Source: Paragordius varius
Taxonomy: Eukaryota > Animalia > Nematomorpha
Length of the DNA stretch: 64,000 nt
Direction: 5' to 3'
Assembly (NCBI GenBank): GCA_964247055.1
Contig: OZ176052.1
Coordinates: 9,548,001 to 9,612,000 of the forward strand
Positions 3,810 to 58,878 of the stretch are shown in pieces. Under the pieces are notes generated by a model. The model saw only the letters and a program-made list of their open reading frames with translations, was not told where the DNA came from and did not search any database. Both the position numbers and the translations under genes were made by a program. Numbering within the stretch: the stretch's first letter is position 1; every line of letters starts with the position of its first letter.

Positions 3810-4977
3810 ATGGTCAAAAAATTAAATATTTTTAGCAGCAGATTTTATCAACAAAGTAATAATTCAATTTAATTAGGGTTTTTTTCATGGAAAGATCCAT
3901 TGAAACTTGAAGAACAATTAAATACAGAAGAAATTGCTATCAGAGATAATTTTAGGAAATATTGTAAGGAAAAATTATTTCCAAATGTTATACTTGCTTA
4001 TCGCAATGAATGTATAGTTCTTATTAAATATAGGTTTCAACAAAGATATATTTAGAGAGATGGGTGATTTAGGGGTGTTGGGAGCAAGTCTCAAAGGTTA
4101 CGGGTTACCAGGTATATCATCCGTTGCACATGGACTATTGATGAAAGAAATTGAAAGGTTTTCTTTTTTTAGTTTTGAAATATTTTATCAATGCTTACTA
4201 TATTAAATAGAGTGGATAGTGGATATCGTTCTTGCATGAGTGTCCAATCGTCTTTGGTTATGTACCCTATACATGCTTTTGGAAGCGAAGATCAAAAAAA
4301 TGAATACTTGCCCAAATTATGTATAAATAAATTTAGACAGTTTCATTTTTATATTTATGTATAATAAACTCAGTAAAAACGAAAAAATAAAGAATCGAAA
4401 TAATGCAATTAACATTAAAGGGTTATTAAAGTATTTGATTTAAAAGATATAAATAGATTATGTACCTAAAAGTATGTACTGTTTCTAAATTAACCAATAT
4501 TACTGATTAAATTTGAAGTATTAATAAGTCGAAACTCAATTACAATCTAGTCTTTAATGATTTTGTTTTTTCTATTTATAAAATTACTCCCAAAATAATC
4601 ATTGATTGATTCAATAATTTATTAAAATTTTATATGTGATTGACCTATTCCAAAAAATTAAAAATTACAATACCTATATTATATATATATATATATATAT
4701 ATTATCAAACTAAAATTTTTTTCCCCAAACTATAATATAGCCAAAGGTCATTTAATTGGTTGTTTTGGGTTAACGGAACCCAATCATGGAAGCGATCCGG
4801 GATCAATGGAAACAACGGCTCGTACGATAAAACGAAATGGAAAAACATTTTATCTTTTAAACGGGACCAAATCATGGTATCCTAATTTAAATATATACAT
4901 AGGCAGTTTATAAGAATGGTTTCGATTTTTTTTTAGATAATAATATAATAATTGTTTTCTAGAACTCGATTATAAAT

Positions 4978-5037
<60 letters not shown>

Positions 5038-8000
5038 AGTAATGGAAATATATTATTGTGCGAAAATGGGGATCGAAAATTAATATTTAGAATCATATGG
5101 TATTCGATAGGTAGAAGTTTTAGGATGTGTATTTAAATATTAATGCTGTTAGAATAGATAAAGGTTAATAGCCAGAATTAAAAAATTATATTTAATATAA
5201 AATAAAATTAGGGTGTTACCCCTTTGCAAATTATGATAAAATATTTATATAACATTGATATATTGATTAAACTATGTATATATATTTGTGTATATATGAT
5301 AGTTAAAATAAGAAATTAAATCTTTAACCACCAATAACAAGGTTTTATGTTTTAAAATTGACGTCAAACAGCGGTATTTTAAATTAAATTTAAATCCTGT
5401 TAGAGGTCCAAGAATCCCTTGAAAAAATGTAATATCGATAATATTTTGCGTTTATGATAACAAAAAAATTAAATAAACACATTTTCATCTATAATATTTA
5501 ATTTTTTTCAAATGCTAGCATTAATTTTGGTTAATAGCAGAAAAATTAATAAACAGTACATTTTTCATTTTAATATATTATATCCTAAAACTTTTAGTTA
5601 TCGAATGATAGATATATTTATAAAATTTATTTGCTCGGCACCGTGTTTTGAAAATATGTGGTAGACTTTGTTGATTATGAAGTAATTAATATGACAATAT
5701 TTTAAACAAAATATTGATTGGTCCGTAGAACTAATTAATTTACTCTTATACCACTTTTAATTTTAATATAAAGGATCACAAATTCTCCCATTGCTGATTT
5801 ATGTTTGGTGTGGGCCCGTGTCATTCCAGAAAACGAAAATTCAAATAAAACTAATGACCCCAGGATCAAAAGTAAATTTCATTTTTTTAAAAAAACGGTT
5901 ATGGATCAAATGTATGGTTATTCAGTCAGATGGTTCTAATTTCGGATTCCCTTTTTTAAATTTATGAATAACCTTTTTTTATTACAATGAAGATTTCGCC
6001 AAATATAAGCAAATAACCTTTCAAAACTTTTATCTGGATATCAAAAAACATGATTCAAAGAAAACAGAAAAAAATAAAATTAAAATTTAATGCGCCCATT
6101 AATAATTTGGATCATTTTCAAAAACGGTATAAACCGTTTATAAAATTATTTTGGCTTTTAGAAAAGCTAGTTGGACCAGTATGACAAAAACGGTTTTTGT
6201 TCCGTCTTTAAACTTAGCATTTCCACATAAACTACACAATCCTAACTGGATAAATATTAATATTTTTTAATAATTTTGGTAAAAAAATGCTTTTTTCCTA
6301 TATAGAATCAAACACTCTACGCGGTTTTCTTATTCCCAAAGGAACGGTCGGTTTATCCTGTCCTGAAATAAAAGGAAAATTATCCCTCAGAGCATCTACC
6401 ACCGGTCAAATCGTTATGGAACATGTTGAACTTAGTGAAGACGCTATGTTACCTGGTGTTGAAGGGTTTAAAGTAAGCGGTAATTTCAATTAACTTTTTT
6501 CATAAATTTACCCATATTTCTTAAAAACAAACAATCTAACTCAAAAACGTGTTAACATATCTCCTAAATATAATAATATCATAATTGAATATTACCTACG
6601 ACAAAAAATTTTTGCCAAAATTTTTAAATATGGATAAACTTGCCTTTTTATGTTTAATAATGGTTTTATTTTAGGTGTTGAAATGCTTTTGTAATAAAAA
6701 TAGTTTTGTTTTAAATAATGGGTTAAATACGTTAGTTCTGCAATGTAAAGTAATTTCACTACAACATTTTTCATATTATTTATTTCTTTTCAGGGTCCTT
6801 TTAGTTGTTTAAATAACGCAAGATACGGAATAGCATGGGGTGTCATGGGTTCAGCCGAATTTTGTTTTGAAAAAGCTCGCGAATATGTTTTAGATAGGTA
6901 AGTTGGTTTAATAAAATTATATTTTCTATATTTTTTATACTTTATAAATTATAGGTAATTAATAAATTATAACCATATAAATATATATATATATTAATAT
7001 GAAGTGTAATTAAAATATTAAAATATAAATTGGTTAAAATTAATATACATGGGGGGATAGTAACTTCTTGATTATTTGTTTAATTTACAAATTAGGTTAA
7101 ATTTTTAGCATTGGAAGCTTAGACAATGTTTTTTGTATGGTTCTCTCTGGAAATTAAATCTCGACACACAGTTGCATATTATTTTTTCGTGGCAATTTAA
7201 TTTTAGGAAATATCATTATAAAAAAAGCTTTTAAATTTATTATTTTGATAAAAGATAATAATTTATAATAATAAACATATAGATCACAATTTGGTAAACC
7301 CTTGGCCTCATATCAATTAATACAGAAAAAATTGGCCGATATGATGACTGACATAGCTCTTAATTCTCAAGCCTGCCTACGCGTAGGTCGATTGAAGGAT
7401 GAAAACAAGTAATAAAATATTTCAAATCATATGCAATCATAAAAAGATTATTTTAATTTTTGTGATCGGTTTTTTTGAAAAATAGCGTTATAATATGTTT
7501 AACATACAAATGTCTGTTCTAAAATCTGTAAAGATTGTTCTACTCGAAAAATCACCCACACAGTTTTTACAGTATTTTCCTGTATCCAGGGATTAATAAA
7601 TTTTAAATTTGAAACCAATGATGATCCATCATCATTTTATAAATTGGCATTTTTATATCACTAAATGTCAGAAACAATTTAGCTACATTTTTATTTAAAA
7701 ATTAATTTTATTAATGTTTTTATAATCCTTTTTCACATAAGAGCTACACCAGAGATGATATCTTTAATCAAGCGTAGCTGTTGTGGCGCAGCTATAAACA
7801 TAGCGCGAACTGCAAGAGACATGTTGGGTGCTAATGGAATTAGTGATGAATACCATGTTTTAAGACACGCTATGAATTTGGAAGCGGTTAATACGTATGA
7901 AGGTAAATTGGTTTTAGTATCCGTTTCTGATATAGTGCCCACTTAATTGTTGGCCTATTTGCATTACAGTAACGTATGTTAAAAACAAAGGTTATTTCAA

Positions 8001-8962: not shown

Positions 8963-8975
8963 TAAATTTATTTAT

Positions 8976-9250
8976 TTATTTGGCTATTTGTCTCATTAAA
9001 TTATTATTTAATTTTTCAAATTTTTTGAATTCCTGCATGTATCGCGTTTTATATTGCCAGCACTATATTATAAATTTATAATAAACCTTAACATTATCAG
9101 TAACTTTGAAATAAACTTTCCCAAGTTTGTGATTATGCTTTATACAAAATCTCGTCTTAAATTTACAAATGTAATTACCTTATTCGGATTATTTTGAAAA
9201 AGCGTTTCAGTTTCCTTTTCAAATTCTTCCCAAGTGTGGACATAAACCAT
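8976..9250 (-). CDS. SRP9: Signal recognition particle 9 kDa subunit (3 exons)
   Basis: Exons 9250-9179, 9155-9087, 9062-8976 give MVYVHTWEEFEKETETLFQNNPNKTRFCIKHNHKLGKVYFKVTDNVKCWQYKTRYMQEFKKFEKLNNNLMRQIAK*. This matches the SRP9 pattern TWEEF..., KVTDD..C..YKT..Q..KK.EK....LMR. Confidence 0.9.
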
Positions 9251-9302
9251 GTGTTTACGATATGTAATATAAACTATTTGAAGAAAGGTGTTAAGCCGGG
9301 AA
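9251..9302. promoter_or_regulatory. Putative 52-bp bidirectional promoter/5'UTR region between SRP9 and MSH6
   Basis: It is the only sequence between two divergent start codons. Promoter function is inferred. Confidence 0.55.
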
Positions 9303-12300
9303 ATGCAAACAAGTTTATTAAAATTTTTCACCAAATCCAATAAAGCTTCTTGTGGCACACCACCAAGTTTAAATTATTCTATAGTTTTAGCCGATTCTAA
9401 AAAATTTGAATTGCACGACGTTATAATTATAAAAGATAAAAATTGGCCAGCCCTTGTTACCAAGTCGAATGATGGTATATTTTTTAATGGAAACGAATAT
9501 TACGTTCAATTTTTAATTAAAAACGAATGCAAATGGGTTTTACAAAGGTAAAATATGTATTTTAATATTAGCCACATTATAAAGTTTGCAGTAAATTGTT
9601 TCCCGACTATTTTAACGGTTGATTCGAAATTAGCTTTTGATTTAGCGGAACGATTGGCTAAAACTCCAAATAATAATAGATTAAACTTGTTATTGAATTC
9701 TGATAAAGAAAATAAAGTAAATAATTTAATTTTAATATTTTAGATTGCAACACCAAAAAGGTAAAAGATATTTTTTAATCATAGCAAAAAACCCGTTATA
9801 TATTCCTCCGATGAAGATGAATCTTTTAATATAAAAGTTTTTTATTAATAAAATATATTTCAGAAAAGAAAAAAAGCTCTCTCACCTTCGGAAAATCGTT
9901 TAAATAATTTTAAGTTTGAAAAAGAAGTTGTCACATCTCCTCTACAAAGTAGTCAATTACTTAATAAAAATGATGAAAAATTGGACTTGTACCGAACAAT
10001 GTTTGCCACGCCTAAAAATAAAAAAATAGTAATAATAATTTTATTTTCGGCATTTTTTGCAATTATTAAGTATCTGAAATAATAATGTTTTTCAATGATG
10101 TAACAACCAGTAAAATATTTTATAAATGGTATAAACAGTTTTTTATCCGCTGCAATTATGCTGCTAATTTACGTATTTTCACGATACTTTCGCAATCATT
10201 TGTTAAGATTATTAATCATTAAACTAGCTCTAGTTTCAAAATATCATACTGATAAATCTTAAAAATTTTTTACTCGTGGTATTTTTTAGTTTAAAAAAAT
10301 AATAGCTTTAAAGATATCATATATATCAAGACGCCGTTTGTTAATTTTATATTGGAGATATGTATCGACAAGGAAAATCTATTATATACATAATAAAAAG
10401 TTATTTTTTCTTAATTAGAATTATTTGAATTTTAAAAGCTTTACAGACTTATCTCAGTATTTACAAACTCATTGGGAAGTTCTTTAAAAAATTCATCATA
10501 TTCTTTTGAGTTTTGTGTATAAGATAAATTTTAGGGCGTAATTTTACTATGTGTAAGATCTATTTAATTTAAGACCTCTAAATAATATGTTATTTTTCTA
10601 AATATAATTTCTTTGACATATATCATAAAAATGCATCCTAAACATTTAACCATTTATAATTAGGCTTTGAATAATTGCCTAAATTTAAACAGGTTGGAAA
10701 GCGCTTTATAAAATAAAAATCAGTTTAAAATTGTATCTTTGCTAATAACAGAAAACAGTAATAATCAAATCAATATATTTATAAAACCAAGATTTGAATA
10801 TCTAAATTACATCGCTAATTTATTTAAAGCTAGGTGAATTTTAATGCGGGTAGTGATTCTTAATTAAAAACTGGCCCCACAATTTCGATTCAATCAAATG
10901 GGTATACCAAAACGCTTTTTAATAAGTTGACTGACACTGGTTTTAAGGTTTTAAACAATAGAGGTTTCCCAAATTATTCCAAATTCCATTTTTCTGTTTT
11001 AGTAAATTTTCAAAACGAAATAGAATAATAAAAAAGAAGCAATGATAATTTATGCCAAAAAAAATAATTTATTTTGATTGTGATCTAATACCTTAAAAAA
11101 CATAACCTTTTAAGGATGAAATTAAAATACTCAAATCTAAATATATTTTTTATTGACTCGTGTTCAAGTGTAATTTTTTGTTTTAAGGAGACAATGAAAT
11201 CTACACCTTCGCTTACGCCCACTCGAACTAAGCAGGATTGCAAATTCGTCCATCAAACATTGGATTGGTTGAAACCGGACAAACGAAGGTTTTAAAGGAT
11301 TATTAAGAATACTACTATTTTTTGGAATCAAAATTATTTCGTTTTACTATTGTTTAAATCTTTATAAACATAAAATATTGTCACCAATCAATAACTTCTT
11401 AAGTATAATTATTTCAAAATCATATTTCAACATCCTCCCCTACATAAAATTGTTTATAAATATATGTTTTCCCAAATAAATGATTAGAGATGCACAAGGA
11501 AGACTTATGTCACACCCAGATCACGATACACGGACACTCCTTGTTCCTACAGATTATTTACGAAAAGTAACGCCGGCCTTAAAACAATGGTGGAATATAA
11601 AATCTCAACGATTTGATTGCGTGCTCTTTTTTAAGATTGGAAAATTTTATGAACTTTATCATATGGACGCTTTGCTTGGAATTAAAGAGTTAGGCTTAAG
11701 CTTGATGGGTTCAAAAGATGTTGAAGACAGTGGTTTAAATAATTCGATAAGGTAAAAATTATGTGTGAATTCTGGTTTTTCTTTTACTTTTATGGCAAAC
11801 CAAACATTTATTCTAATCTATTATTTATTAGTTCAAATCTAGATGATAGTATTGTAGGCTTAGAAAAGGTGAATACTACGCCTGGTTCAAACGCCGGTCC
11901 TGTTAATGCTCATTCTGGATTCCCTGAAATCGTTTGTGAAAAATATATGGAAATGTTAGTTGAGAAGGGATACAAGGTATTGTAGGGAATAAAATTTGGG
12001 TTTTGCGTTTTAAGCGTAAGTTAGCGTTGGATTTTGGAGTTTTAAATAACAATTGGTCTGACAGCTTATGATGCAGTTATTGGTCATACATCGACGTTAA
12101 ATAAATGTAATATCAAATAAATAATATTAACTGTTCTTGATTAAATTGTTAAACAAGTATATATTAATAAGTAATAGTAACAATTTAGTTATTTTAATAA
12201 CGGTCATCGTAAATCTAATAAATATATTTTAAACTTTTAATGTGTCATTTAGGTATGTCGCGTTGAACAAACTGAAACGGTTCATGCAATGGGGCAAAGA

Positions 12301-14703: not shown

Positions 14704-14739
<36 letters not shown>

Positions 14740-20700: not shown

Positions 20701-21904
20701 AAGTTATTTAATTTTATATAACAATCAATGTGTACATGCACAAATTAATACAAAACGCTATATATAACACAGGCCTGTATTATGTAAAGGGCTTAAATTG
20801 TATTAATTTTGTTCCTACCTTTGCAAAGTAAAAGCTTCTAAGGAATTTTTATAAATAATAAAATTAATTTTTTTAAGGAAGAGGCACGGCCACATTCGAT
20901 GGAGTCGCTATAGCTGATGCTGTTATCAAGTACATCCAAAACGAAATAAAATGCCGCACTATATTTTCTACACATTACCACATGCTCGTGAAAGATATTC
21001 AAGATTTACCATCCATATCTTTGGCTCACATGGTTTATTTTAAGCGCACATTTTTCGAAAAGATATTTCAAAATTTGTTCAAGAGTGTCCTTGAACACTT
21101 CAAGTTGGTCCTTGAACATTTCAAGTTGGTCATTGAACACTTCAAGTTGGTCCTTTGACTTTTTTGTTTTATTTTTAACTTTTATCAATCAAATCGTAAA
21201 TAATTCATCTATTTTATTGTTTTTAACCTATTTTCTAATATTTAACATAAATTTAATCGATATCAACTTTTAATCTTTAAGAAACCGTATATCTTTATTA
21301 ATTTCTTAAAATAATTTTGATTTATAAGATTTTAACACGAAATCAAAAAATATATAAGTTTTCTGGGTTATTAATTAAAATTTTTCATTAAAAACATTTA
21401 AAAGTCAAATAATTTTGTTCAATTGAAAAAAAATAGTTTGAAACAAAAAAGTGGTTTTTCAATAAAAAATTTTAATAAAAGATTATATATAATAAATAAA
21501 GAAAATTAGGTTAAAAAATAGTAAAATAAAAAAATAAATGCAAAAATTATTAAATCAAAATTTGTAAATTTTAAGGACCAACTTGAAGTGTTCAAGGACA
21601 CTCTTGAAGTGCAAATGGTATATATTGATAAATATCAATCTTTAAGGCATGTTACGTTGATACACAAGAAGACACGTTAGAGGAAAATGGTAATAATAAT
21701 AATAATAATAATCAAAACGATCATAAAACAGTAGATGATAACAAAGCAATAACCTTTTTATATAAATTAAAACCTAACGCATGTCCAAATAGTTATGGTT
21801 TTCATGCGGCACTCCTGGCCGGTATGCCCAAAACTATCGTTCAAAAAGCATTTAAGCGGGCTAAAGAATTTGAATCACAATTCCAAAGTATGGCAATCCA
21901 ATAA
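9303..21904 (+). CDS. MSH6: DNA mismatch repair protein MSH6 (25 exons)
   Basis: N-terminal PIP-box-like QTSLLKFF and a PWWP-like segment. Mut[13 protein letters not shown] and AHSGFPE; [10 protein letters not shown]; [12 protein letters not shown]; Walker [10 protein letters not shown]; Walker [16 protein letters not shown]; FSTHYH; CPNSYGF. 24 GT-AG introns with donors at 9548, 9717, 9761, 9837, 10029, 11289, 11752, 11977, 12311, 13060, 13549, 14180, 14493, 15084, 15924, 16721, 17007, 17486, 18457, 18791, 20151, 20359, 20680, 21033. Confidence 0.95.
21081..21620. mobile_element. Foldback MITE FB-1 in the last MSH6 intron (left end degraded)
   Basis: 21-bp unit TTCAAGTTGGTCCTTGAACAC repeated at 21081-21155, with an inverted copy at 21574-21620 ending AAATGGTA followed by TA. 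Same family as 51741-52150. Confidence 0.75.
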
Positions 21905-25000: not shown

Positions 25001-25229
25001 CCACATCTTACATTTAATATTAAATTAAACCCAATATCCAGAATAAATGAAGGTTTAGCCAAAGATAACAGTTCGATTGCACGTTCACTCATTTCAGTTT
25101 GTATTTGAATGATACGAGAACTAACTTTTAAAATAAGTAATAAAACCTATTAGAATATTTAATAGATTCTCTTTCGTCATAAAAATTTTCGGGAGGACCA
25201 GCATATTCGGGCCTTTTAATTTTAGGCAT
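22003..25229 (-). CDS. BUD23: 18S rRNA m7G methyltransferase BUD23/WBSCR22 (12 exons)
   Basis: Exons 25229-25147, 25120-25031, 25006-24924, 24634-24538, 24402-24306, 24222-24172, 24093-24008, 23390-23223, 23028-22979, 22899-22872, 22249-22130, 22057-22003. Motifs: [80 protein letters not shown]-terminal [13 protein letters not shown]. Missed by the ORF track. Confidence 0.94.
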
Positions 25230-25258
25230 GCTATTTTTAATGTGTGCGTGAATAACAC
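25230..25258. promoter_or_regulatory. 29-bp divergent intergenic region between BUD23 and ELOF1
   Basis: GCTATTTTTAATGTGTGCGTGAATAACAC lies between the two ATGs. Regulatory role is inferred. Confidence 0.55.
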
Positions 25259-25546
25259 ATGGGTCGAAAAAAGAGCAAAAGAAAACCTCCCGCTAAACAA
25301 AAGGCGATTCAACCTTTGGAAAGCCAATTTGACTGTCCTTTTTGTAATCATGAAAAATCTTGTGATGTAAAAATGTAAGTTTGTCTATTTTATATTAGGG
25401 ATCGTGCTAGAAATACGGCTGTAATAACATGCAGGGTTTGTTTAGAAGAATTTTCTACTACTATAAACTATTTATCAGAACCAATGGATGTTTATTGTGA
25501 TTGGGTTGATGCTTGTGAACAAGCTAATCAAGTGGATAAAGAATAA
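25259..25546 (+). CDS. ELOF1: Transcription elongation factor 1 homolog (2 exons)
   Basis: Exons 25259-25374 and 25399-25546 give [87 protein letters not shown]. It has the Elf1 zinc ribbon CPFCNH..CRVC. Confidence 0.96.
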
Positions 25547-25562: not shown

Positions 25563-26173
25563 TTATAAATCTTCACGATTATTTAATAATTTTTTGATAT
25601 GCGGAACCAGTTCTATTGGGTTTGTTGTTGGTCCCCAGCTTCCTACAATTTGTCCATTTTGATTTATTAAATATTTCCAAAAGTTCCACGTTGGTGGTTG
25701 TGAATGTTCTAAATATTAAATTTAAATACCAGCTAAATACAACCACAGTGGCTCTACGTTTTCCCAACCGCGAGATATTATGTCAACTTTTTCACATAGC
25801 GGAAAATTAATATGATATTTGGAAGTTGCAAAGGATTTAATCATTTCATTTGAGTCAGGTTCCTATAATTATCAAAAATATACTTGCTCCCAAAATTGAT
25901 TGCATGGAAACGCCAAAATTATAAAACCATCTTTAAACTGATCTTGCAAAGAAACCAATTCTCTATAATGGGTATCCGTATAACCGCATTTACTAGCAAC
26001 ATTTACTATGAGCAAAACCTATAGTAATTTAAGTCCGATACTTTTCCTTTGTAAACATCCAATTTTACCGAGTTCCCGTCTATATCTTTCACTGTATAAT
26101 CATAAACAGATTTATTTCCCGATATTGTAGGACAATGGATTATTATATGCAAAAAAAATATTTTCAACAACAT
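25563..26173 (-). CDS. GPX7: Cysteine-type ER glutathione peroxidase, GPX7-like (4 exons)
   Basis: Exons 26173-26042, 26018-25884, 25862-25730, 25708-25563. Signal-peptide-like N-terminus; VNVASKCG with a TGC (Cys, not Sec) codon; AFPCNQF; PTWNFWKYL; C-terminal REDL ER-retention signal. The GPX7 versus GPX8 call rests on the signal peptide and REDL. Confidence 0.88.
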
Positions 26174-28421
26174 AATAGCTAGCTTGAAAGTAAGCTCAAA
26201 CTTTTTTAACCATTTTGTGCCTGCATTCATTCAAATTAGCCTGTATCCATCATTTCACATAATGAAAACATGCTTTCGTCAACAATGGATTCACTTTTAT
26301 CTATTATATAGACCACACATTTAGATTCACCTATATAAGGATCACTCAGGCGTAGTAAACCCTTCATCCTTCCATACTCGATACTTATAAGTGGTAGTCA
26401 TCAAAAATTTTAAAGGGTCGAATTCATGTCATAAGCGCTGTGCGTTATAAAATACCGACAAATATTTACTGGCAGTTTGACACATATCAAGATATTTATA
26501 AATAAGTTGATTAAAGAATTAAATCCATTAAAAGCAATTTAAGGCCCGCAGTTCAAATACCACAGGCGGAAGGAAGGAACGAACGACCTTAAAATAGGTA
26601 AAAGATAGGAGAACTAGAGTGCAATTCTTTTATTAACTTATTATAATAATGTGTGTCAAGGGAGACTTAAGTATAATAATTACTGACTCTACGTAGTTTA
26701 GTCTATGAATTAATTAACTTACATTGTGTCCAGATTATTAGATCCGATGTGATTACAAAATTAAGAAAATCCGTGTTGGATTGATAAAACAATATAAATA
26801 TAAAAGTCCCTAAAGCAGTGGTACTAACCAATTTTTTATAATATCTTAAGAGGTTTTTTAACCCATTCTATAACGCCTCAATCAAGTACGTTTCAACAAA
26901 ATTTTGCTAAAAAATTAAATTTTTAAAAAATTGCATTTTATTAAATTTTCAATTGATATCAATATTTAGAATAAAGTTATTATCGCACAATCCCGACATT
27001 TTTGTGTTAATATAAAGAACTAGCCCATTTTAGACGAGCGAAAAAAATTGTCACCTTTAAGGCGTCCATCTAAAAATAAAAAAATTATGCTTTTAATAGA
27101 TTCATTATATATTTTAGTGTAGTTATATTTTTTGGAATGAAGCACATAGCTTACACCAAATGAATTTTATTTAAAAAGTGCGCTAATTTTGCCATTTTCT
27201 GATATCGATCAGTTACCTGAAAAGTTTAAAAACTTTTTTATATAATTTTTAAGGCTAAAACCAAACGCACCATAATAATCCTGTTTTTGTGGACACTGTG
27301 GTATAAATGATATAATATTTTTAATTTATAAAATGTCCACCTAAATTACTAACAAAATGGGTGGTGTCAATTTATATTAAATAATTCATTACCATTTCAT
27401 TTTTTACAGACAATTACATTTTGGAGTAATTTATTACTCCATTACCTAGGGTAGTTTTATATATACCAGAGCGATTTGAAATTCGAATTGTAAGGTATTA
27501 TTAGGCCGAATTTAAAAATCTGCTTTCTTTAGTCTTTTGAGTGCATCATACTAAGAAATTTATTAAAAAATATAATATTGTAAAAAATTTTTCATCTAAA
27601 ACTTTTGCCGCCATTTTTTCCTAAAATTTTTTAAATCGCTAATGCAACACACAAAAGGTAGAGGACAAAAAAATGTAAGTAAATGTTAATAACCAATTGT
27701 AGAAAGCCACCTTAATTGTTATATTTCAATTATCAAACCATGTTTTCTTGTTTGAAAAACAAAAACTTAAAAAAATTAAAGAGTTATAAATTAGAGCCGC
27801 AACACCATTGAAATAAACAGTTTATATTATAATTTTTATCAAAAATTAGTAGGTAAAATGTAATTCAAAAGCTTTCCATCAAATATTTTCATTATTATTT
27901 ATTTGCCTGTTGTATTAGTGAATTATAAATCAAAGAAAAAAATGGGAAGAAAAATTTTGAGGTAAGGATAATTCTAAAAATTAAAAAAAATTATACATGC
28001 TCTTAATAGGTTAAAGAAATAAACAATACTTTTAAAGATATTTATATTTAAAATGGCTCGTATATATATCGCAGTAAGTAATATAGTGTTATATTATATA
28101 AATAGCCTATTAAGTAAATAAATTAGTTTTCAATACCATATGAACTTTGACTCTATGCTTTTTTTCACAACTTCTTAGTTGAATCGTTAGAATTGTACCG
28201 CTTATAAAATATATACATGTTAATAATATAAAAAGGAACAATGGTTTTAGCATACTTTTTTGGCTAACACATGTCATGTAAAATTTTGTGTTCAGGTTTA
28301 TTCATATATTAAAGTAATATAAAGTGACTTTGGATAAATCATTTTATTTATGTTGCTTACATTCCTGTTATGACAGGTTAACTACCTAAATTGGGAAACT
28401 TGTAAACATGATTAGTATTAA

Positions 28422-31998: not shown

Positions 31999-33140
31999 TA
32001 GAATGACCAGATTTTTTCAAGGAAAAAGCGGGACAAATCTGAGAAAAGGGGAGGGCATGGGGGGGTGGGGGGTTTAACCAAAAATTTTTATACAATAGTG
32101 TAATATTTATCTATTTTTAGCACAAATACATTATAAATATAAAAAAATATTTTATTCCTGGGTCGTAGGTTATTTGTACCTTAATAATAAATTTCCATGT
32201 GCACGAACAAAGGGTGAAGCGATTGTATGCAATGTCATTTCAACAATGCATTTTCTAAAATAGAAAAAGATTTACAGAAAATAAATTTCATATCGCTATA
32301 TTCTGATGCACATAATTATTTCCCACTCTCATTCTCTACCAGTGAAATTCTGACATAAATTTTACTTCAATAATGAATATTCTGGAAAAAAATAATTTAA
32401 AAGACAAAATCATCGCAAAGTGCGTTGGGTGGAAATGCAAGGAGCGGCACAAAAAAATATTTTTAATAATTTAGCGAATAATCTTAATCAAAACATTATT
32501 GGCGGATACACAACGCTATTCAAACAGCTGATGATTTACTTCTGGATGTGGAAAATTTAGTTGTTAAAATGCTTGGAAGTGTAGAACTCGTTGGTTAGCT
32601 CTTTTGCCAGCTATTAAAAAAATTTAAAAATGTATGATCACCTAGATTCCTATTTTTTATCGTAGGACAAATGTCTAAAATTCCAAATCAAAAAAAGTTA
32701 GAAAATAATTTTATACCATTACCTAATCACATAATTATAAATCATCCAAAAAAACAAGGCTCAATGAATAGCCAGGATATAAAAATGTTTTATACAAACT
32801 GAAAAATTTGGAATACAAGACGGTGCAATTTAATGACTTTTTCTGAAGTATCATTATCATAAATATATTGATGATGAAAACTTAAATTATGGACAACAGA
32901 AAAAAATACAGTAGAATAGGAATGGTTTGAAATAATTATTTTTAAACAAACTATATTCCATACAATAATAAAAATTGTAGAATTAGCATTATCTTTACCT
33001 GTGACCACTGCTATTGAACGCGTTTTTCCACAGCACATGTTTGGACACGGAAAAATCAAATTTAAATGTTGAAACTTTACTAGCCATTTTATGTGTTCAA
33101 ATATAATTTGACAAATTATTATGAAGACTTATACAATATT
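31999..33140 (+). pseudogene. Degenerate Blackjack-type hAT fragment (TIR plus deleted transposase)
   Basis: Begins TAGAATGACCAGAT...CGGGACA, resembling Blackjack-type termini. Contains a hATC-like KIVELALSLPVTTA.ERVF near 32970-33030 and is an inverted homolog of 33380-34640. Confidence 0.65.
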
Positions 33141-34900: not shown

Positions 34901-35731
34901 GCATAAAGAACATTTAACAAATGATTCATTCTTCGTTTTTTTGATAAAAGGATATTCTTCATTAATTCATCGTTGAATTTACAACCTTTTGTGCCTATAT
35001 TTTTAAACTAATATTAGTATAAAAAAATATCAATTACCTTAATTTTCTAAACGTATAAGCTACCGATTTGTGGTATTAATTTGTCTTTTTGATAATGTTG
35101 GCAGGTAATATAACTAAAATATTAATATAAAAAAATTTTATTACCTTAATTTTCTGGAGTAAGTATGTAAGCTACCGATTTCGGTATTAACTTTTGTTTT
35201 TGATAAGTAGGAGTAGGAATCAAAGTGTATAATCATATGATACAAATTCGAATAAATTTAGAGTATTTTAAAAAAAAATTTTATAATCAAATTATTTCGC
35301 CGTCATTTTTATTTTACAACATTTATTCAAAATATCGTTTTAATTTAAAAGCGAAGATTACAATGTATTTTTATTCAAATTAATCTAAAATTGCTAGAAA
35401 CAGAAGTGATTTATTTTTTATATTTTGCTAATGCACACATGTCAGGTTGACTAAATTTTTACCTTTGGGTTTTACCTAATAAGTAATATCAAGCATTTTT
35501 GTATGATTTTTTTATATTTGGGTTCATGTTATATAAATGCACACTTTTGCCATGGTTTCAATTACTTAGATATTTTTTGAAGTATTTAATTTTAAACACT
35601 CTAGGGTATCCCCAATTAGAATCGACGGAATAGAATGAATATGTTGCATACAAGTGTTAATATAGTATAAAAACACCTTTTTTATTTATAGCTGATGCTG
35701 AACATTTTGATCGTTTCAGAATTATACTTAA

Positions 35732-37906: not shown

Positions 37907-37937
<31 letters not shown>

Positions 37938-39354: not shown

Positions 39355-40517
39355 ATGCAAGAAAACGGTCCCTTAGATGTTGTGAATATTCCCGCAAATG
39401 AAATGAGTAATGAAGATAATAACAAAATTGGTATTGATGTTAAGATTTCGAATATAAATGGCAAAACAAATGCATCAAACGAGCATTTAAGCAAAAGGAA
39501 GAGAAAGCATAATAGTATAAATATAATTAATAAATAGAACGTCAATGGAATCAAGAAAAAATTAAAAAGGCCTATCAATTATTAACAAAGAACACAAAAA
39601 AATCACTTAGAGAACTTGAAAATGAATTAGATATAAATCCACAAAGTATCGCTAAATTTCGTAAGAACATGGCAAATGGACAAGAGTTTATTGTGAGAAA
39701 AAAAGGACCTAAAAGTATATTAAACAATATAGAATTTCAACAATCTCTAATTGAAATAATATCATCAGAAAATAGCTTAAATCATCACCAAATTCATGAT
39801 CTGCTTTCCCCAAAATTTAAATTCTCACATAAGATTATTCCCAAATGTTTGGCCAGTCTGGGCTATGTTGACAAAAAGTTTTTCGGGAATTATGTTAATA
39901 TAAACACCCCAGAAATTATCGAAAAACGTTTTCAATATGCATATCGCGTTAAAGATATACAGATAGATAAATTGATTTTTCTAGACTTTAGAGAGGTCAC
40001 TCCCAAAAAGAGTATTAGTCACATATGGGTTCGTGAGAATGAAGAAGCCCGTTTAAAAAGCAAAGATTGCATACGATATACATGTTTAATTGACTGCAAC
40101 GGTATTGTTGCGCAAGATCTTAAACAATATCCTTATGATTCATCTTTTTATGAATTATTTATTTCAAAGTTTTTATCACAAACTACCGATGTTTTTGTAG
40201 TTTGTGATATAAATTCTATTCATCTTGATATGAGCTCAAAGTTACTTGCCAAATATATCAATCAAATAATTATATTACCGCCATATAGTCGGCAACTTAA
40301 CCCAGCGCACACATTTCTTGACAAGGTTCTTAGCAAGTTTGACGAATATAAAAGCAAGGATAGCATCGACGCTATTTCCAACGTCATGTCCGCAACGCAA
40401 TCTGTTGACACCTCTAGAATGAAAGATTTTTATAATTATTCAAACAGTATTTTGCATGATTTTGCATTACAGAAAAGAGATTTGTTGAATCATATGCGTT
40501 TCATTGATACAATATAA
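39355..40517 (+). CDS. IS630/Tc1/mariner-derived protein of 379 aa, probably a domesticated transposase (2 exons)
   Basis: A 23-nt GT-AG intron (39515-39537) joins the 60-aa and 282-aa ORFs in frame. It has NLS-like KRKRK, two HTH-like segments, and a DDE_3-like core LIFLD...VVCDINSIH...LPPYSRQLNPAH. No TIRs seen. Confidence 0.8.
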
Positions 40518-43790: not shown

Positions 43791-43909
43791 TATATTTTGA
43801 TCTTTTATCTTTATTATATTTAGTTTTTTCATTCCAAATTAGTTTCCATTAAAAACAATTTTTTGTTTTGAACTATTTTTTTCCAAAACATTATTAACCT
43901 ATTAATATA

Positions 43910-46752
43910 TACCATTTTTCATGCAAAAACATCATTTTTTCAACCAAATGCAACATTTTTTCAACCAAACTCAACATTTTTTCAAGCAAACGCAACATTT
44001 TTTCAAGCAAAGACAACATTTTTTTGAGCAAACGCAACATTTTTTCAAGCAAAGACAACAATTTTTCAAGCAAACGCAACATTTTTTCAAGCAAAAGCAA
44101 CATTTTTTTATCCAAACACAACATTTTTTCAACCAAAGACAACATTTTTTCAAGCAAACGCAACATTTTTTCAAGCAAAGACAACTTTTTTCGAGCAAAC
44201 GCAACATTTTTTCAAGCAAAGACAACAATTTTTCAAGCAAACGCAACATTTTTTCAAGAAAAGCAACATTTTTTTATCCAAACACAACATTTTTTCAAGC
44301 AAAGACAACAATTTTTCAAGCAAACGCAACATTTTTTCAAGCAAAAGCAACATTTTTTTTATCCAAACACAACATTTTTTCAACCAAAGACAACATTTTT
44401 TCAAGCAAAAACAACAATTTTTAAAAAAATAAAAACCCTTTTTTTTATTTTAAGACATATTAAATTAAAGTTAATGTAAATTAATTTTAACGTAGAATTA
44501 TGATTTTTATTGTTTTATCATCAATAGATGGTGTGATTGATTTTCAAACATTTTAATTTAGCCCAAAAATTGCATTATTTATTTATATTATTTATTTTTT
44601 TCTTTTACAATTTAAGTTTCACCTAATCAGTCTATACTGCGCTTCAAGATTGTTCTTTCACATTTAAACTTAGTCCTAGAACACTTCAAGTTGATCCTTC
44701 AATATTTAATTTTGATTTTAACGTTTATTAATGAGGCAATAAAATATTCATTATTCAATCATTTAAACCTATTTTTTTATTTAACCTAAACCTTTAAGTG
44801 ATTACATTTCTTTCATAAGAACCGTAAATCCTTATTATTTTTCTATAAATTAATATCAAAAAATATCTATTATTGATGGTAATATTTAGTTTAAAACAAT
44901 AATAAATTTATAATATTGATAAATTAAAGAAAATTTTCAAACAAAGTTGTTTTACTATGAAAATATTAATTTTGATTCAAAAACTAATAAATAGAGATAT
45001 TAGTTTAAATTTAAAAAATAGATAATTACACACAAAAATAACGGTTGTATGGAAACTGCTATGTATTTTAAGCGAAGGATAACTTTAAATTTTTAAAGAG
45101 AGTCTTAAAGTGCAAATTGTATTGATTGATAAAAAAAATATTTATAAATAAACAATGCAATTTATGGGCTAAAAAATGTAAATCAATCATACCATCAAAT
45201 ATTGATGATATTACAATAAAATTCATAATTCTACGCTAGAATTAATTTACACTAACTTTAAATTTAATATGTCTTAAAATAAATAAATGGTTTTTTATTT
45301 TAAAAAAATTGTTGTTTTTGCTTGAAAAAATGTTGTCGTTGGTTGAAAAAATGTTGCGTTTGGATGAAATAATGTTGCCTTTGGTTGAAAAAATGTTGCG
45401 TTTGCTTGAAAAAATGTTGCGTTTGCTTGAAAAATTGTTGTTTTTGCTTGAAAAAATGTTGCGTTTGCTCGAAAAAATGTTGTCTTTGCTTGAAAAAATG
45501 TTGCGTTTGCTTGAAAAATGTTGAGTTTGGTTAAAAAAATGTTGCATTTGGTTGAAAAAAAGATGTTTTTGCATAAAATTTTCAACCAAACTCAAAATTT
45601 TTACCAAACTCAAATTTTTTTCAAGCAAACGCAACATTTTTTCAACCAAAGACAACATTTTTTCAAGCAAAAACAACATTTTTTTAAGATAAAACCATTT
45701 TTTTTTATTTTAAGACATATTAAATTTAAAGTTAATGTAAATTAATTTTAGCGTAGAATTATGAATTTTATTGTTTTATCATCAATATTTGATGGTATGA
45801 TTGATTTCAAACATTTTAATTTAGCCCATAAATTGCATTATTTATTTATAAATATTTTTTTATCAATCAATACAATTTGCCCTTTAAGACTCTCTTTAAA
45901 AATTAAAGTTATCCTTCGCCTAAAATTCCTTACATTTTTTGCAGTTTCCATACAACCGTTATTTTTGTTAATTATCTATTTTTTAAATTTAAACTAATAT
46001 CTCTATTTATTAGTATTTTTTGAATCAAAATTAATATTTTCATAGTAAAACAACTTTGTTTTATTTTTTTTATCAATATTACAAATTTATTATTGTTTTT
46101 AACCAAATATTACCATCAATAACCCACACGTAGATATTTTTTAATATTAATTTATAGAATATAATAAGGATATACGGTTCTTATGAAAGAAATGTATTCA
46201 CTTAAAGGTAAAGGTTAAATAAAAAAATAGGTTTAAATGATTGAATAATGAATATTTTATTGCCTCATTAATAAGCGTTAGAATCAAAATTAAGATATTG
46301 AAGGATCTACTTTAAGTGTTCTGGGACTAAGTTAAAATTTAAAAGAACAATCTTGAAGCGCAGTAGAGATTGATTAGGTGACTTAAGTTGTAAAAGAAAA
46401 AAATTATTATAATAAATAAATAATGCATTTTATGGGCTAAATTAAAATGTTTAAAAATCAATCATACCATCAAATATTGATGATAAAACAATAAAAATCA
46501 TAATACTACGCTGAAATTAATTTACATTAACTTTAAATTTAATGTCTTAAAATAAAAAAAATGGTTTTTTATTTTAAAAAAATGTTGTTTTTGCTTGAAA
46601 AAATGTTGTCTTTGGTTAAAAAAATGTTGCGTTTGGATGAAAAAATTTTGTCTTTGGTTAAAAAATGTTGCATTTGCTTGAAATAATGTTGAGTTTGGTT
46701 GAATAAATGTTGCATTTGGTTGAAAATATGATGTTTTGCATGAAAAATGGTA
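43910..46752. mobile_element. Compound foldback element FB-3: a 2.84-kb palindrome with four 21-bp tandem arrays
   Basis: Termini TACCATTTTTCATGCAAAA/TTTTGCATGAAAAATGGTA flanked by TA. Unit TTTTTTCAAGCAAACGCAACA (variant AAAGACAACA). 44420-45300 is the reverse complement of 45680-46560. Confidence 0.85.
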
Positions 46753-46884
46753 TATTAATGACGAATTGAAATAATTAACCCACAATTAAATATTTATTAA
46801 TTAATTTTAAAAAAAATAAAAAATACGGTTTTTTTTATGAAAAGTTGATACTGATTTAAAAGTGGCTAAGTTGATAGGATAGAT

Positions 46885-50719: not shown

Positions 50720-52720
50720 AAATAGATAGCAAAGAATTTTAATGACCAAGGAAAGACTACAAGGAGTTGAATTAATAATGCTTGGAAGTTGAAAAAAAAC
50801 ATGATATTTTTTTACAGCCAATGTTTCAGAGACTGAAGCAAATAATTCACAAACCCCATATATCATCCCAAAGGAATACCGAATGGCATACTTTTGTGGA
50901 AACAAACAGAAGTAATTGAAAACTGGAGGGATTCACCCAAAAAATTTATCACACCTCAAACAATCAGTTTACTAAAAAAGGAACGTAATCCACATATAGT
51001 AAGAGAGTAGAAAGCTTTAAAACAAATTCATAACAATAAAGCAATAAATATCCCAAAAAAGTTTGTAACATCTATTCCTATAAAAACGTGATACTTATGC
51101 TAAAAAGTTTGGGGAACATGTGAGTGGCCGAAAAATTGGGCATCATCTTTATCTTCCAATATACAAAAATGGTGTATCACAGTGTGAAAATTAAATCATA
51201 GCATTATCCGTGATAGTAAGGTCGCGTTAAAACTATTACTAAACAGGATTCACAATATTATACTGTCAGAAATACCAGAAAATTAGGGCCGGATTTATGA
51301 AGGAAAAAAGCACAAGTCGTATATAAACATGAGAGTAATAGTGGAAGCATCTAGATAGTTTCAGAATGATTTATATTGTTTTACCAATTACAACAAGCTT
51401 TATATTCGATTTATGATTCGTTAGAAAGTGACAATTGACATCGTCGCAGTTAATAAGATTGATTATTTCATTATATACAGAACAAACAGCAATTATACGA
51501 ACAACAATAGAAGACACAAAAATATATCGAACAAGGGGTCAGACAAGGGTATTGCTTACCCCCTTATCTGTTCAAAATTGCACAGGAATGATTATGAGAA
51601 AGTTATATGATAAAAGTATTGGAGGAATAGGAAGAAGAACGATCAATAATTGAAGGTTTGCAGACGATACCACCCTTATAGCAGAAAGTGTAATCGATGA
51701 AAATTTGAGTTATAGTTTTATTTTACCTAAAACTTAAATATACCATTTGCAATTCAAGAGTGTCCTCAAGTTGGTCTTTGAAGACTTCAAGTTGGCCCTT
51801 GAACAATTCAAGTTGGTCCTTAAACATTTAAACTTGGTCCTTTGACTTTTTTGTTTTGCTTTTAACTTTTTCTATCAAATCGTATATCATTCATCTATTT
51901 TATCTTTTATAACCTATTTTCAATTATTTAACATTTTAATAATTGAAAATAGTTTATAAATGATAAAATAAATCAATGATTTAAGATTTAATTGATAAAA
52001 GTTAAAAACAAAACAAAAAAGTCAAATTACCAACTTGCAGTGTTCAAGGACCAACTCGGAGTGTTCAAGGATCAACTTGAAGTGTTTAAGGACCAACTTG
52101 AAATGTTCAAGGTCCAACTTGAAAAGGACACTCTTGAAGTGCAAATGGTATAAGCACCTCAGAGCATACGATTGTTAAAGATGGGGTTGAAACAGAACTA
52201 GTTAATCAATTAACATTTTTGGGTGATCGAATTTTCCAGGAATCGTCGACTTTAATAGGCGACGACCAAACTAGTAATTAAAGAGCAAAAGTATAGGAGT
52301 TAAAGCAAAAACAAAATTATTCAATTGTTTTGTTTTCCAGTTACCACATCAGGGCGTGAGAGCTGGTTTTTAAAAAAGAGACAATGAAAATATCCCTTTT
52401 TAAAGGAGGTGTTGGCCTAGGATACTTGGATAAACATGGAAATACAAAATTAATAATGAAAATTATAATACACACATAAATCCTAAAAACAAATACTTAG
52501 AGATAATTTAGAAAAGAATGTTATCTATTTTGGTCGTGTGTGGTCCAATTTTTTAGAGAAAGACAAAATAATTGGCAAGTGAAAAGAGAAAACAAGGCCG
52601 ACCACAGATGAAGTGGTTGGATATGTTAAAAGAGACTAAGATGTCATTGAAAGATTTGAATGTAGCGGTAAACGATAGAAGTGGATATCAATAGTGCAGA
52701 CCATATCCAAAAAGCATTAA
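50720..52720 (+). mobile_element. Degenerate RTE-clade LINE (non-LTR retrotransposon)
   Basis: Fragments QGVRQG..L.P.LF, GG..RTINN..FADDTTLIAES, KT.IS...IVKDGVETELVNQLTFLG, GRESW and C-terminal GRP..KWLD...NDRSG. Many stops. The 5' boundary is approximate. Confidence 0.8.
51741..52150. mobile_element. Foldback MITE FB-1, complete, inserted in the LINE
   Basis: TA|TACCATTTGC...GCAAATGGTA|TA with inverted arms of the 21-bp unit TTCAAGTTGGTCCTTGAACAC. Confidence 0.88.
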
Positions 52721-54658: not shown

Positions 54659-54728
54659 ATTTAAACTATATATGTTTTTGTCTCTGAATCCATACACCAT
54701 GTGAAATTTAACATGTGTTAACAATTTT

Positions 54729-55958
54729 ATGTTGCCTGCTAAAATTTTAAATAATTTTTCTCCAGGTTCCATTTCTTTTTTTCATACTACGGCATTCACT
54801 CTAAAAAAGTTATGTTATTTATAATATATCAGAGATATTTATAAAAAATTTGGCAAAAAGGGAAATTGGCTTGATTACAATAAAGCCATTTTGCCACCAC
54901 CCGATAACAAAGATGACGATAAGGCACGATATGCGGTACATATAAAATAATTTTAGGAATTTTGCCATGAGCGGCGAAACATAAAATATAGTGCAGAAAA
55001 ATTGTGGTATCCTGCCAAAATGATTCGCGGTATGTCTATTGATGAAGCTATAAAACAATTGACATTTATTCAATATTATGGAGCTAAAGTCATAAGAGAT
55101 GTTTTGCTTGAAGCCCAAGATTTAGCAACTAAAAATCATTTTTTTGAATTCAAATCTAATATGTGGATCGGTATATTTTTTCTAAATTTAATCCTTTTTT
55201 AACCCTATATTTATTTAAGCCTAAATTTTATTAAGACTTAACCTAACCAATACGTTTATATTGTGGTTTCTAGCCCTATTAGTTATGCTCATAAATTAAA
55301 AAATATTTTATTTTTGAATTTATACACTTTTAATTTTCTGAATTATTTTTAATTCAATAATTATAAAATTATCAGATAGTGTTTATTTTTTTGTCCACCA
55401 ATATTTCAAAAAATATCTGCCGCCGTATAATTGAACGTCGCTTTAAAAAATGATTCAAACCGAATTATTTATAACAGTAAACCCATTCCTAATTTCGAGT
55501 AAAACGCCGAAAAATATTTTAAAGTTGTTAGTTAAAAAATAAGATCTTGTTTTTAACAAATTCATTCATTGGTTAAATTTTGAAAGTAACTAATTTTAAA
55601 CAATATGCACCATAAAAAATAATTTAGGACAATATTACATAATTTGTTTTGGTTATTAAGCTAATAAATAATAAATGGACATTAAACAGTGTTTTATTAT
55701 AATTACCAATAATTTTTTAATTTATTGTTTATGTAATTAGCCGAATCATTTTGCACGAAAGCTCTCATGATAAAAGGGATGAGAAAGCAGGCACGAGGTC
55801 GCGCTTCTATCGTAAAATATCGTTATTGTCATTACTTTGTCCGTTTGTTGGAAGGACAACCGCCCGATCTATATTATCCCAAACTTGCTGAAGGATTCGA
55901 ACAGATCAAAAAATATATGGATATACATAGAAATCAAAATATTGATCATGCTCTATAA
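54729..55958 (+). CDS. MRPL22: Mitochondrial ribosomal protein uL22m (4 exons)
   Basis: Exons 54729-54808, 54833-54935, 54957-55170, 55741-55958. Motifs: HERRNIKYSAEKLWYPAKMIRGMSIDEAIKQL, VLLEAQDLA, EFKSNMWIAES, YCHYFVRLLEGQPP. Confidence 0.93.
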
Positions 55959-56012
55959 TATAAATTTTTATTATATGCAACTAACATATTTTCATTACAC
56001 ATTCAATATCAT

Positions 56013-58878
56013 CTATGTGTCGATGTTGCGTTTCCATTTCGGTATGTAAACGCATGCATCATGTAATTCATCCTTCTTTTGAATCCAATACTTTTTTCCA
56101 ACCAAATAATAGGAATCGGGGTTTTGTGACTGATAAAAGAGAGATAATTAGATATAAAATATTTCAACATCCCAAAAATATATAAAGATGCAAAAAATGT
56201 TACCCTTTGTTCGCACATATAATCTTTATCGCGTTCCCATAGGAGCTTACATGTATTTTTACTGATATGAATTTTGAAAGCTATAAATTAACATATTTTG
56301 GCATACCTGATCCTGTTTGACAAAGTTTGATGGCTGTAGTAACTGTATCACCGAAGAGACAATATCTCGGTAATTTCATACCAATGACCCCTGCCACCAC
56401 GGATCCTAAAACAATATCAATTCATATATATATAGAAATGGATTATTATTGATTTTACTAATGTAAGTTTTTACCTTAAATTTGTTGCTATTATTTAGAT
56501 TGGACTTTGACAATAAGTTAAATTTTATAACGATTCGTTGAGTCTATAATTATTGACTAATTGATTAATTATTTTAATGATAATGTTATGACCTAAAATA
56601 TATCAGTTAAAATAAAATCCTTTCTTTGATAAATAGATATAAAAACCTGTATTAATTCCGATGCTTATCGTAATGTAAGTTGATTTCTTATGAGGAATTT
56701 CGGTGTTTTTACAAATGGTTAGCAAATCAATAGCTAACAAAGATATTTCTTCGACATGTCTAGTTCCATTGTTTGTGGTTATCCCGCTAGCTGCCACGTA
56801 ACTATCATTGACGGATTCAATTTTTTGCACATCATAATAATCCATTTTCTTATCGAATTCGGTAAAGAGTGTATTGAGTAAATTTAAAACCTGAAATTCA
56901 AGTAATAAAAACCATAGTTAGTTATGAAATTATAGCTAAAAGTGGCAATTTTGATAACGATAATATGATTCGTTCTATCGATCATGTATTTTTCGTACAA
57001 ATCGAAGTAAATATAAGAGTTGAGTAAGCTGTATATGTAGGGTAAAGTTTTCGTAAATACAGCCATAATCAGTAAAAAATTGATATATATAAAATCGAAA
57101 AGCAGTACAATGGCCAATGCAGCCTTTTTAATTGAAAGGAAAAGTATTGCACTATGAACGGCTTATTTACGTTGATTATTGCCATTTTATCCTGGTTTAC
57201 CAAAAAAAATTTACAGTTTATATTTGGACATAGTTTCTGAAATAACATCGAATTTAAGCAAATTAAATTGATACAAATTTGAATTTTGTGAGATTCATTA
57301 TTAAAATTGCCTCATAGGCCTTTCCTAGTAAACTGTACATATTTTTGCGATTGCAGAGTCGGTTTTTATTGATTCATGGCAAAGTAAAACGCTTTTTATA
57401 GATTCACAACTAATATAAAATTGATGATGTGTCTTACAAAAATACTCTCTGCCATTAATCATATATTTTCGATAGTGCATATACAGTTAACGAGTCCTCA
57501 CTGGGGTTTAAGTCTTATGGCAAAACGGATTGATTTAAGGCAAAACATAACTTGTCATTAAAATGTTGTACAAACATTTTTTTTTAACGCCAAACCAAAC
57601 ATTATATACATATATATATACTCCGACCAGTCAAAACCAACTTTAAATGATAAATCCCATGATTCTCAAAAATTAATCCAAACTATGTCAGCTAAATCTA
57701 CGAGGGTTAATACATATGCAGGACTTTACACCCAGTGATTTAATCTCGAGGGTAATTACTAATTTTCATTTATCCTCCTTTTAACCTAAAAAGGTCAAAT
57801 TTTTTAACTTAACTAATTATGCATTTTTAAACTATGGGTTCTGAAGTCACATAAATATTATAAAATCGACTTAAGGCCAATTACGATTGCAAACTTGTTA
57901 ATTATAATATCTAAAATATTTGATGCTAAGCTGATTATGTTATTATGGAATGAACCTCAATATATTTTGCACAGTTCTATTATGTAACCTGCTTTATACA
58001 GATATAATATACAACCATATCTATTTTTCTATGCCAAGACTAAAAGATTAAAAAAAGCTTTAAGGTAATTACTTATTTTGGCTTTAAATAATTCTATTAA
58101 TATTAATGCTTTTAGTATAGTTTAAGACGCTTACTCTGACCAAATATACGTATTTTTTATCAGACAACAAATATCAGAATGCGTTTTGTATACATGATTT
58201 TTGTTTGATTGAAACATCCTAGCCTTACCTTATTAACAATATAATAATTTTAATATATAATAGTATCACGACAATGCAAAATTTTAAGTCAATTTTACGA
58301 TGCTGCCAATTTTATTAATTTTCTGGGATTTAATTAAATTATAATACAGTAATATAATAATATATTTGGCTTTCACCAAATCAATGATTTGCTAGTATGA
58401 GAATATAGTTTTTAAATTATACACATATAAATGGCGATTGAAGGACAAATCTCAACTAACTTTGTTAAAATAGTGTAAAAAGGTTTTCAGCAAATTAATA
58501 TATTTTTACACCTATGGCAGATGTATAAGTTTATTCCCTCGAGGTTTGTAAGTAATAGGATAAAAATTTGTCTTTTCTGAATATATATATATATATATAT
58601 ATATATAATAATTTTAGATTGAAAGTCCTTTATGACTTGGCTCTTAAAACTGTAAACTTTTTGAATATATTGAGAGATATTCGCAGAAAAAATGAAATTA
58701 TATTAATCAAAAGCCCCAAATGTTATATTAAAAACTAAAGGATCAGATGCTTATATATTATGATTCATTTACATTACAATGTTATAAATTCAACAATAGC
58801 GTATGGTAAAAAATAACAAATTGTTGAAATTAAACATTTTCCCTATATTTTAAAATTAATTTTGTGTATAATTTTACA

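Follow-up and report, generated by a model that had tools for sequence, protein, structure and literature searches.

How short can a spliceosomal intron become in an animal, and can the shortest introns share a gene with introns of ordinary length? The question is raised by a stretch of 64,000 nucleotides (nt) from the horsehair worm Paragordius varius (Nematomorpha), positions 9,548,001 to 9,612,000 on the forward strand of contig OZ176052.1 (GenBank assembly GCA_964247055.1, 110.56 Mb in 44 contigs). This stretch, called the window here and numbered from its first letter, is 27% GC and contains ordinary animal genes divided into many small exons. A sequence-only reading had picked out 18 segments of 21-27 nt within it, each beginning with GT and ending with AG, and had called them ultra-short spliceosomal introns of an animal-like genome. 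For a long time animals were believed to lack introns of less than 30 nt. The segments nevertheless look genuine, in that their termini, the reading frames and the homology of the exons agree. Very probably they are U2-type GT-AG introns in nuclear genes of the hairworm, reduced by shrinkage to a length of 21-27 nt, or of 28-32 nt in the case of two further loci. They would form a minority class biased towards the 5' ends of genes and presumably recognized by intron definition.

All 18 segments lie where that reading placed them, on the same strand and with the same length, and removing each one leaves a spliced frame that is open in exactly one phase. The termini alone prove nothing, since GT and AG are common at this spacing: 1408 pairs in the window fall in the range of 21-27 nt, a density of about 11 per kb on each strand. 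The support comes instead from homology, which was tested with single exons; translations of joined exons were computed solely as a check of the frame. At six junctions (4012, 25007, 25121, 25375, 25863, and 26019) Pfam profiles or solved structures are continuous across the segment, exact to the residue. In the case of BUD23, the exon upstream of the segment at 25121 is aligned to residue 26 of its human homologue and runs two residues further, to 28. Eight other junctions are well supported (3856, 9063, 9156, 9548, 9837, 25709, 54936, and 56281). The positions of the segments and their flanking matches are given in Table 1.

Would other splice sites serve as well? Every GT-AG solution between coding anchors was enumerated. 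At 3856, 9548, and 9837 the solution is unique. At 25709, 54936, 56281, 9063, and 9156 longer alternatives exist, and these remove residues that are aligned to homologues. A 60-nt alternative at 25709, in the gene encoding glutathione peroxidase (GPX), would remove residues aligned to Pfam GSHPx, the chosen junction having about two residues of slack in a variable loop. A 36-nt alternative at 54936 would remove the start of the acceptor exon of MRPL22, which is aligned to uL22m from its first residue. A 41-nt alternative at 56281 would remove aligned residues of the guanylate cyclase, whose Guanylate_cyc match reaches within one residue of the end of the exon. For the two SRP9 junctions the judgment relies in part on an alignment with human SRP9, in which the 23-codon middle exon is presumably colinear with residues 25-47. 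At GCDH, exon 2 is aligned to the human enzyme (1sir_A) from residue 4, and the presequence exon before it is without support from homology. Homologues of MSH6 show a weak alignment between their N-termini, in the region of the PIP-box, and the first exon of the hairworm gene.

If the segments were retained in the message, 17 of the 18 would lead to a stop codon, 13 within the segment itself and 4 shortly downstream (three codons on, in the case of 9837). Retention of the remaining segment, at 25007, brings no stop and would add 8 residues inside the DIGCGTG motif by which BUD23 binds S-adenosylmethionine. The length is a multiple of three in 12 of the 18 (binomial p = 0.005), and 11 of these 12 carry a stop in frame. 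The excess of such lengths could be biological, as in Paramecium, or it could come from a by-eye reader's bias toward cases that keep the same frame. The exons around the segments contain no other frameshifts or stops.

One might suppose that the segments are never removed from RNA but are scars in pseudogenes or small insertions in the assembly, ending in GT and AG by chance. Such ends are indeed common by chance. The supposition, however, calls for nine conserved genes to have been broken solely by AT-rich GT..AG inserts of 21-27 nt that fall precisely between homologous residues, in exons otherwise free of frameshifts and stops. It must also cope with an insert in ELOF1 that falls at an intron position shared with another hairworm and with ends biased, at intron positions +3 and -3 and at exon position -2, in the manner of real splice sites. 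I consider it very improbable.

A relative of more usual size is provided by ELOF1, the single gene for which a shared intron position was checked. The best match to the P. varius gene is that of Gordionus, at a locus that is similarly AT-rich (26.8% GC). Gordionus ELOF1 is interrupted by a single GT-AG intron of 76 nt, at the same codon and in the same phase as the 24-nt intron of P. varius, and the six exon bases on either side are identical in the two species. Because Gordionus has its 76-nt intron at this position, the 24-nt intron is an ordinary hairworm intron that has shrunk, and at least this one of the micro-introns has an orthologue of conventional length. Within 10 kb on either side of Gordionus ELOF1 no orthologue of BUD23 or GPX was found, nor anything beyond ELOF1 itself.

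The same comparison bears on a different idea, that the segments are excised from DNA rather than from RNA, as are the internal eliminated sequences of ciliates, or are lost through programmed DNA elimination. Their size range does overlap that of the shortest eliminated sequences of Paramecium. Their ends, however, are GT...AG in an exon context of the AG|G type, not TA...TA, and an ordinary 76-nt GT-AG intron occupies the ELOF1 position in Gordionus. Furthermore, an animal is what the genes, the genetic code and the mitochondrial genome indicate; the code in the hairworm is the standard one, and that of Paramecium is a variant. I give DNA-level excision less credence still than broken genes or a faulty assembly.

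What would a spliceosome see in an intron of this size? Several features stand out when the remaining GT..AG segments of the window that measure 21-27 nt serve as controls. The 18 segments are 15% GC, as opposed to 31% in the 30 nt of exon flanking each side. At intron position +3, 13 segments have A and 5 have T, with no G or C in any, and there is no conservation beyond, so that the 5' signal is reduced to approximately GTa. T occupies position -3 in 14 of the 18 (31% of controls). On the exon side, 14 have A at position -2 and 16 have G or A at position -1. TTAAT is present in 9 of the 18, as compared to 10% of controls, mostly setting an A 6-10 nt before the 3' end, a candidate branch site; the looser yTnAy is found in 15, as compared to 39% of controls, in an AT-rich setting. 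None of the 18 has the long conserved 5' site of U12-type introns or the TCCTTAAC branch box.

The sequence-only reading had imagined a reduced spliceosome behind these introns. That idea finds no support in the machinery, as U1 and U2 small nuclear RNAs (snRNAs) are canonical and SF1 is present, leaving no sign of reduction. U2 snRNA is found in many copies (the best at 177.7 bits) with the canonical GTAGTA box that pairs with the branch site, U1 snRNA in multiple copies (124 bits) with the canonical 5' ACTTACCTG, and SF1 is represented by its SF1-HH domain. A genome search for U12 snRNA, lacking a positive control, gave no match. The U2 and U1 genes lie in large clusters along with many degraded copies (C3:257000-527000, C2:11.95-11.99 Mb, and C6:565000-633000), the first of which has more than 25 matches to U2 inside 270 kb.

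I propose that the ordinary major spliceosome recognizes each micro-intron as a whole unit, that is, by intron definition. The unit would be a very AT-rich segment with a minimal 5' site (GT, then A or T) and in most cases a terminal TAG; many also have, between the two, a candidate branch site resembling TTAAT. I infer that the segments are removed from RNA, that the A of such motifs may act as the branch site, and that recognition is by intron definition, the natural mode at this size; the normal major spliceosome is the simplest reading.

Several considerations weigh against the case as stated. Splicing is deduced here from reading frames and homology. The candidate branch motif, consisting entirely of A and T in an AT-rich setting, may owe something to composition. 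The 23-residue middle exon of SRP9, too short to score, was matched by no tool, structure search included, and the cyclase exon downstream of 56281 had no match in a structure search. When GT..AG pairs that join long open frames were counted by length in the 64-kb window, there was no excess over control dinucleotides. With that result, the case for the 21-27 nt class depends on homology. Long tandem arrays at 43870-46800, in which more than one frame is open on each of the strands (encoding peptides of FFQ and KQ types), swamp statistics of open reading frame (ORF) length.

Finally, 4 of the 18 are not uniquely delimited (9717, 9761, 54809, and 39515). A single 51-nt intron, 9717-9767, fits MSH6 as well as do two micro-introns flanking a 17-nt exon. 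The segment at 54809 has three solutions that preserve the frame, of 21, 24, and 69 nt, and the MRPL22 exon upstream of it had no match in a structure search. At 39515 there are six alternative GT-AG solutions, and the 327-codon ORF that follows has no relatives in a word-indexed protein search. It is thus conceivable that the class is real and that several of its 18 members are nonetheless drawn wrongly, being parts of introns of 40-70 nt or alternative choices of splice sites, with no 17-nt exon at all. Given the density of chance GT..AG pairs noted above, I regard this as rather more probable than not. It can extend only so far, however, because at 14 of the 18 either there is no alternative or the longer ones remove residues aligned to homologues.

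The explanation by shrunken U2-type introns must also accommodate where they occur. As reckoned from coordinates, 17 of the 18 are preceded by no more than about 460 nt of coding sequence, counted from the start codon; the cyclase intron at 56281 is the sole one near a 3' end. The three smallest genes (SRP9, ELOF1, and GPX) have micro-introns and no others. The same genes can also carry introns of the kilobase scale, as had been claimed from the sequence at the outset and as is now confirmed. MSH6 has at least 17 homologous exons past its N-terminal region, separated by gaps of 110-1190 nt, and the introns of GCDH measure, in order, 21, 22, and about 54 nt, followed by gaps of about 300 to 900 nt (up to some 0.9 kb).

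Elsewhere in the genome, most gaps between neighboring exon matches in HSP70 and myosin genes measure about 45-500 nt. The two tightest of these gaps, the two that were examined, proved to be an intron of 28 nt in BiP and one of 32 nt in a myosin gene. The bulk of introns is not below 30 nt in the body of MSH6 or in the myosin and HSP70 genes. Since micro-introns coexist with ordinary introns of 45-1200 nt, this is a system of two classes, not a uniformly compacted genome. The micro-introns would be the minority, found in the first few hundred coding bases and in very small genes, on pre-mRNAs that would also carry ordinary introns of about 50-1200 nt.

A stronger version of this idea is that position itself determines the class: introns in the first 0.5 kb or so of coding sequence have collapsed to a physical minimum of 21-27 nt, while those downstream are long and filled with transposons. 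I offer this tentatively and would sooner bet against it. If true, it would mean that introns near the cap or promoter are recognized in a mode of their own, or else that deletion is biased towards 5' ends, and it would be a case of extreme intron shortening in an animal in which the genome was not compacted.

Table 1. Genes of the window, the 18 segments that interrupt them, and the possible micro-exon of MSH6. Positions are counted from the first nucleotide of the window.
Feature	Position	Strand	Length (nt)	Phase	Observation
GCDH	~3810-7943	+			ATG at 3810
GCDH intron 1	3856..3876	+	21	1	sole GT-AG joining ATG 3810 to FFSWKDPL exon
GCDH intron 2	4012..4033	+	22	1	flanks match 1sir_A residues 4-46 and 48-89; split codon is residue 47
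SRP9	8979-9250	-
SRP9 intron 2	9063..9086	-	24	0	exon 3 matches Pfam SRP9-21 positions 64-88
SRP9 intron 1	9156..9178	-	23	0	Pfam SRP9-21 positions 1-21 matched by exon 1, which stops at the donor
MSH6	9303 to ~21910	+
MSH6 intron 1	9548..9571	+	24	2	PWWP-like N-terminal region; sole GT-AG solution between anchors
MSH6 candidate intron	9717..9743	+	27		ambiguous; open frame
MSH6 possible micro-exon	9744..9760	+	17		real only if 9717-9743 and 9761-9784 are both spliced
MSH6 candidate intron	9761..9784	+	24		ambiguous; open frame
MSH6 intron	9837..9863	+	27	0	disordered N-terminal region; sole GT-AG solution
BUD23	ATG at 25229	-
BUD23 intron 2	25007..25030	-	24	2	splits DIGCGTG; flanks match 7wtw_q residues 30-60 and 62-88
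BUD23 intron 1	25121..25146	-	26	2	flanks match human 7wtw_q residues 6-26 and 30-60
ELOF1	25259-25546	+
ELOF1 sole intron	25375..25398	+	24	2	flanks match Pfam Elf1 1-37 and 39-79; split codon is 38
GPX (Cys-type glutathione peroxidase)	25566-26230	-
GPX intron 3	25709..25729	-	21	1	flanks match TIGR02540 70-102 (exon extends further) and 116-152
GPX intron 2	25863..25883	-	21	0	flanks match Pfam GSHPx 23-67 and 68-107
GPX intron 1	26019..26041	-	23	0	flanks match Pfam GSHPx 1-22 and 23-67
Weak candidate intron	39515..39537	+	23		open frame; precedes 327-codon ORF (39534-40514) with weak DDE_3 similarity
MRPL22	from 54729	+
MRPL22 candidate intron 1	54809..54832	+	24		ambiguous; open frame
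MRPL22 intron 2	54936..54956	+	21	0	next exon matches human uL22m 5ool_T residues 66-137
Guanylate cyclase	~56012-56917	-
Guanylate cyclase intron	56281..56306	-	26	1	near 3' end; upstream exon matches Pfam Guanylate_cyc 106-140

The genes of Table 1 are in places tightly packed. SRP9 and MSH6 stand head to head, their start codons about 52 nt apart (9250-9303), as do BUD23 and ELOF1, with about 29 nt between start codons (25229-25259), and ELOF1 and GPX meet tail to tail with about 20 nt between their ends. Other stretches of the window, in contrast to such dense clusters, are filled with transposons. Decayed frames resembling hAT transposases, with weak similarity to DUF4371, are found in opposite orientations at 29860-31360 (+) and 33000-35000 (-). 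One short repeat is common to the last intron of MSH6 (21000-21700) and a site 30 kb away (51740-52180). In GPX, the exon at 25884-26018 (-) encodes Cys (in VASKCGYT) where many animal enzymes carry selenocysteine, and the first exon resembles a signal peptide. The best matches to MSH6 are spread over animal phyla. The protein match ranked at the top turned out to be unrelated; it has a tandem duplication and was of no help for the N-terminal junctions.

Is the host truly a hairworm? Judged by its own sequence, it is a nematomorph. The mitochondrial contig (C44, 15,693 nt) has atp6 and about 22 transfer RNAs (tRNAs), the full bilaterian set, and a block of ecdysozoan type, cox1-cox2-K-D-atp8-atp6-cox3-G-nad3-A-R-N-S1. 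Within its nad, cox, and other genes are dozens of inverted repeats that are 100% complementary, whose arms reach 208 nt and whose loops measure 0-14 nt; they encode the same peptide on both strands. Nematomorpha are the only group in which coding palindromes of this kind have been described (PMC6649704, PMC10380579). The contig also has an array of 72-nt units, each a hairpin, at about 6740-7450, just upstream of cox1. It belongs to the nuclear genome studied, because contig C1 (C1:10610780-10614097) contains an old nuclear copy of mitochondrial DNA that is colinear with the end of nad1, the control region, cox1, and cox2 of C44, at 69-81% identity. The closest relatives of a COX1 fragment are no more than 79% identical to it.

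Searches made without a positive control found neither the R&R cuticle-protein domains of arthropods nor the N domains of nematode cuticle collagens. A ctenophore host (Hormiphora californensis, PMC8527503) is ruled out by the absence of its spliced leader, by mitochondrial atp6, tRNAs and ecdysozoan gene order, and by the nuclear copy of mitochondrial DNA. The spliced leader was sought as a 29-mer with 2 mismatches, which had no match, and as a 17-mer with 1 mismatch, whose matches were at the level of chance. Published hairworm genomes are 200-300 Mb (bioRxiv 10.1101/2024.06.11.598342), so at 110.56 Mb P. varius is a hairworm with a smaller genome. The papers on hairworm genomes in the library that was searched make no mention of introns.

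How does the hairworm compare with organisms known to have very short introns? Opisthorchis and its relatives, parasitic flatworms, reportedly have microintrons that form a discrete short class alongside a long class within the same genes. They differ in that the short class is said to be centred at about 30-40 nt, as opposed to 21-27 nt, and in belonging to a different phylum.

Human genes offer a second instance of a short subset in genes with long introns, namely ultra-short introns (<66 nt) and their SPF45-dependent splicing (PMC4463651, PMC8363638), although these introns are at least about 43 nt. By analogy, a factor dedicated to the 3' sites of short introns is a possibility in the hairworm. 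Ciliates (Paramecium, with introns of about 25 nt, Nyctotherus, and Stentor, with 15-16 nt; PMC5014332, PMC9505925) resemble the hairworm in size range, in the presumed use of intron definition, and in that a stop in frame is present in nearly all introns with lengths divisible by three, as in 11 of 12 here. They differ in being unicellular and in having tiny introns almost exclusively, whereas the hairworm has long introns too.

The closest parallels are animals. In a September 2026 survey of 51 animal genomes, introns of less than 30 nt were found only in myxobolid myxozoans and Dicyema, and were tied to parasitic genome reduction (PMC13644364). Dicyema japonicum and the myxobolids (Henneguya, Thelohanellus, and Myxobolus; PMC13644364) share with P. 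varius GT-AG introns of about 20-27 nt, a 5' signal of approximately GTa, weakly conserved A's upstream of the AG, canonical U2 machinery, and parasitic hosts. In those animals, however, the median intron is 22-27 nt, the whole distribution having shifted, and the genomes are reduced and compact (PMC13644364). In P. varius the micro-introns are a minority, clustered near the 5' ends of genes in a transposon-rich genome of 110 Mb. The resemblance to dicyemids suggested by the sequence-only reading thus stands with respect to size and fails with respect to the distribution, in which micro-introns take their place beside introns of 45-1200 nt.

One practical consequence is that existing gene models of hairworms are probably broken in a systematic fashion at their 5' ends, because the smallest intron that standard gene finders and read aligners allow is in or above the range of 21-27 nt. 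If the segments described here are introns, the horsehair worm would be the third independent animal lineage with introns of less than 30 nt, and its case would separate the minimization of introns from compaction of the genome as a whole. It would also offer a natural system for the study of a single spliceosome that deals with introns of 21 nt and of 1 kb within one transcript.

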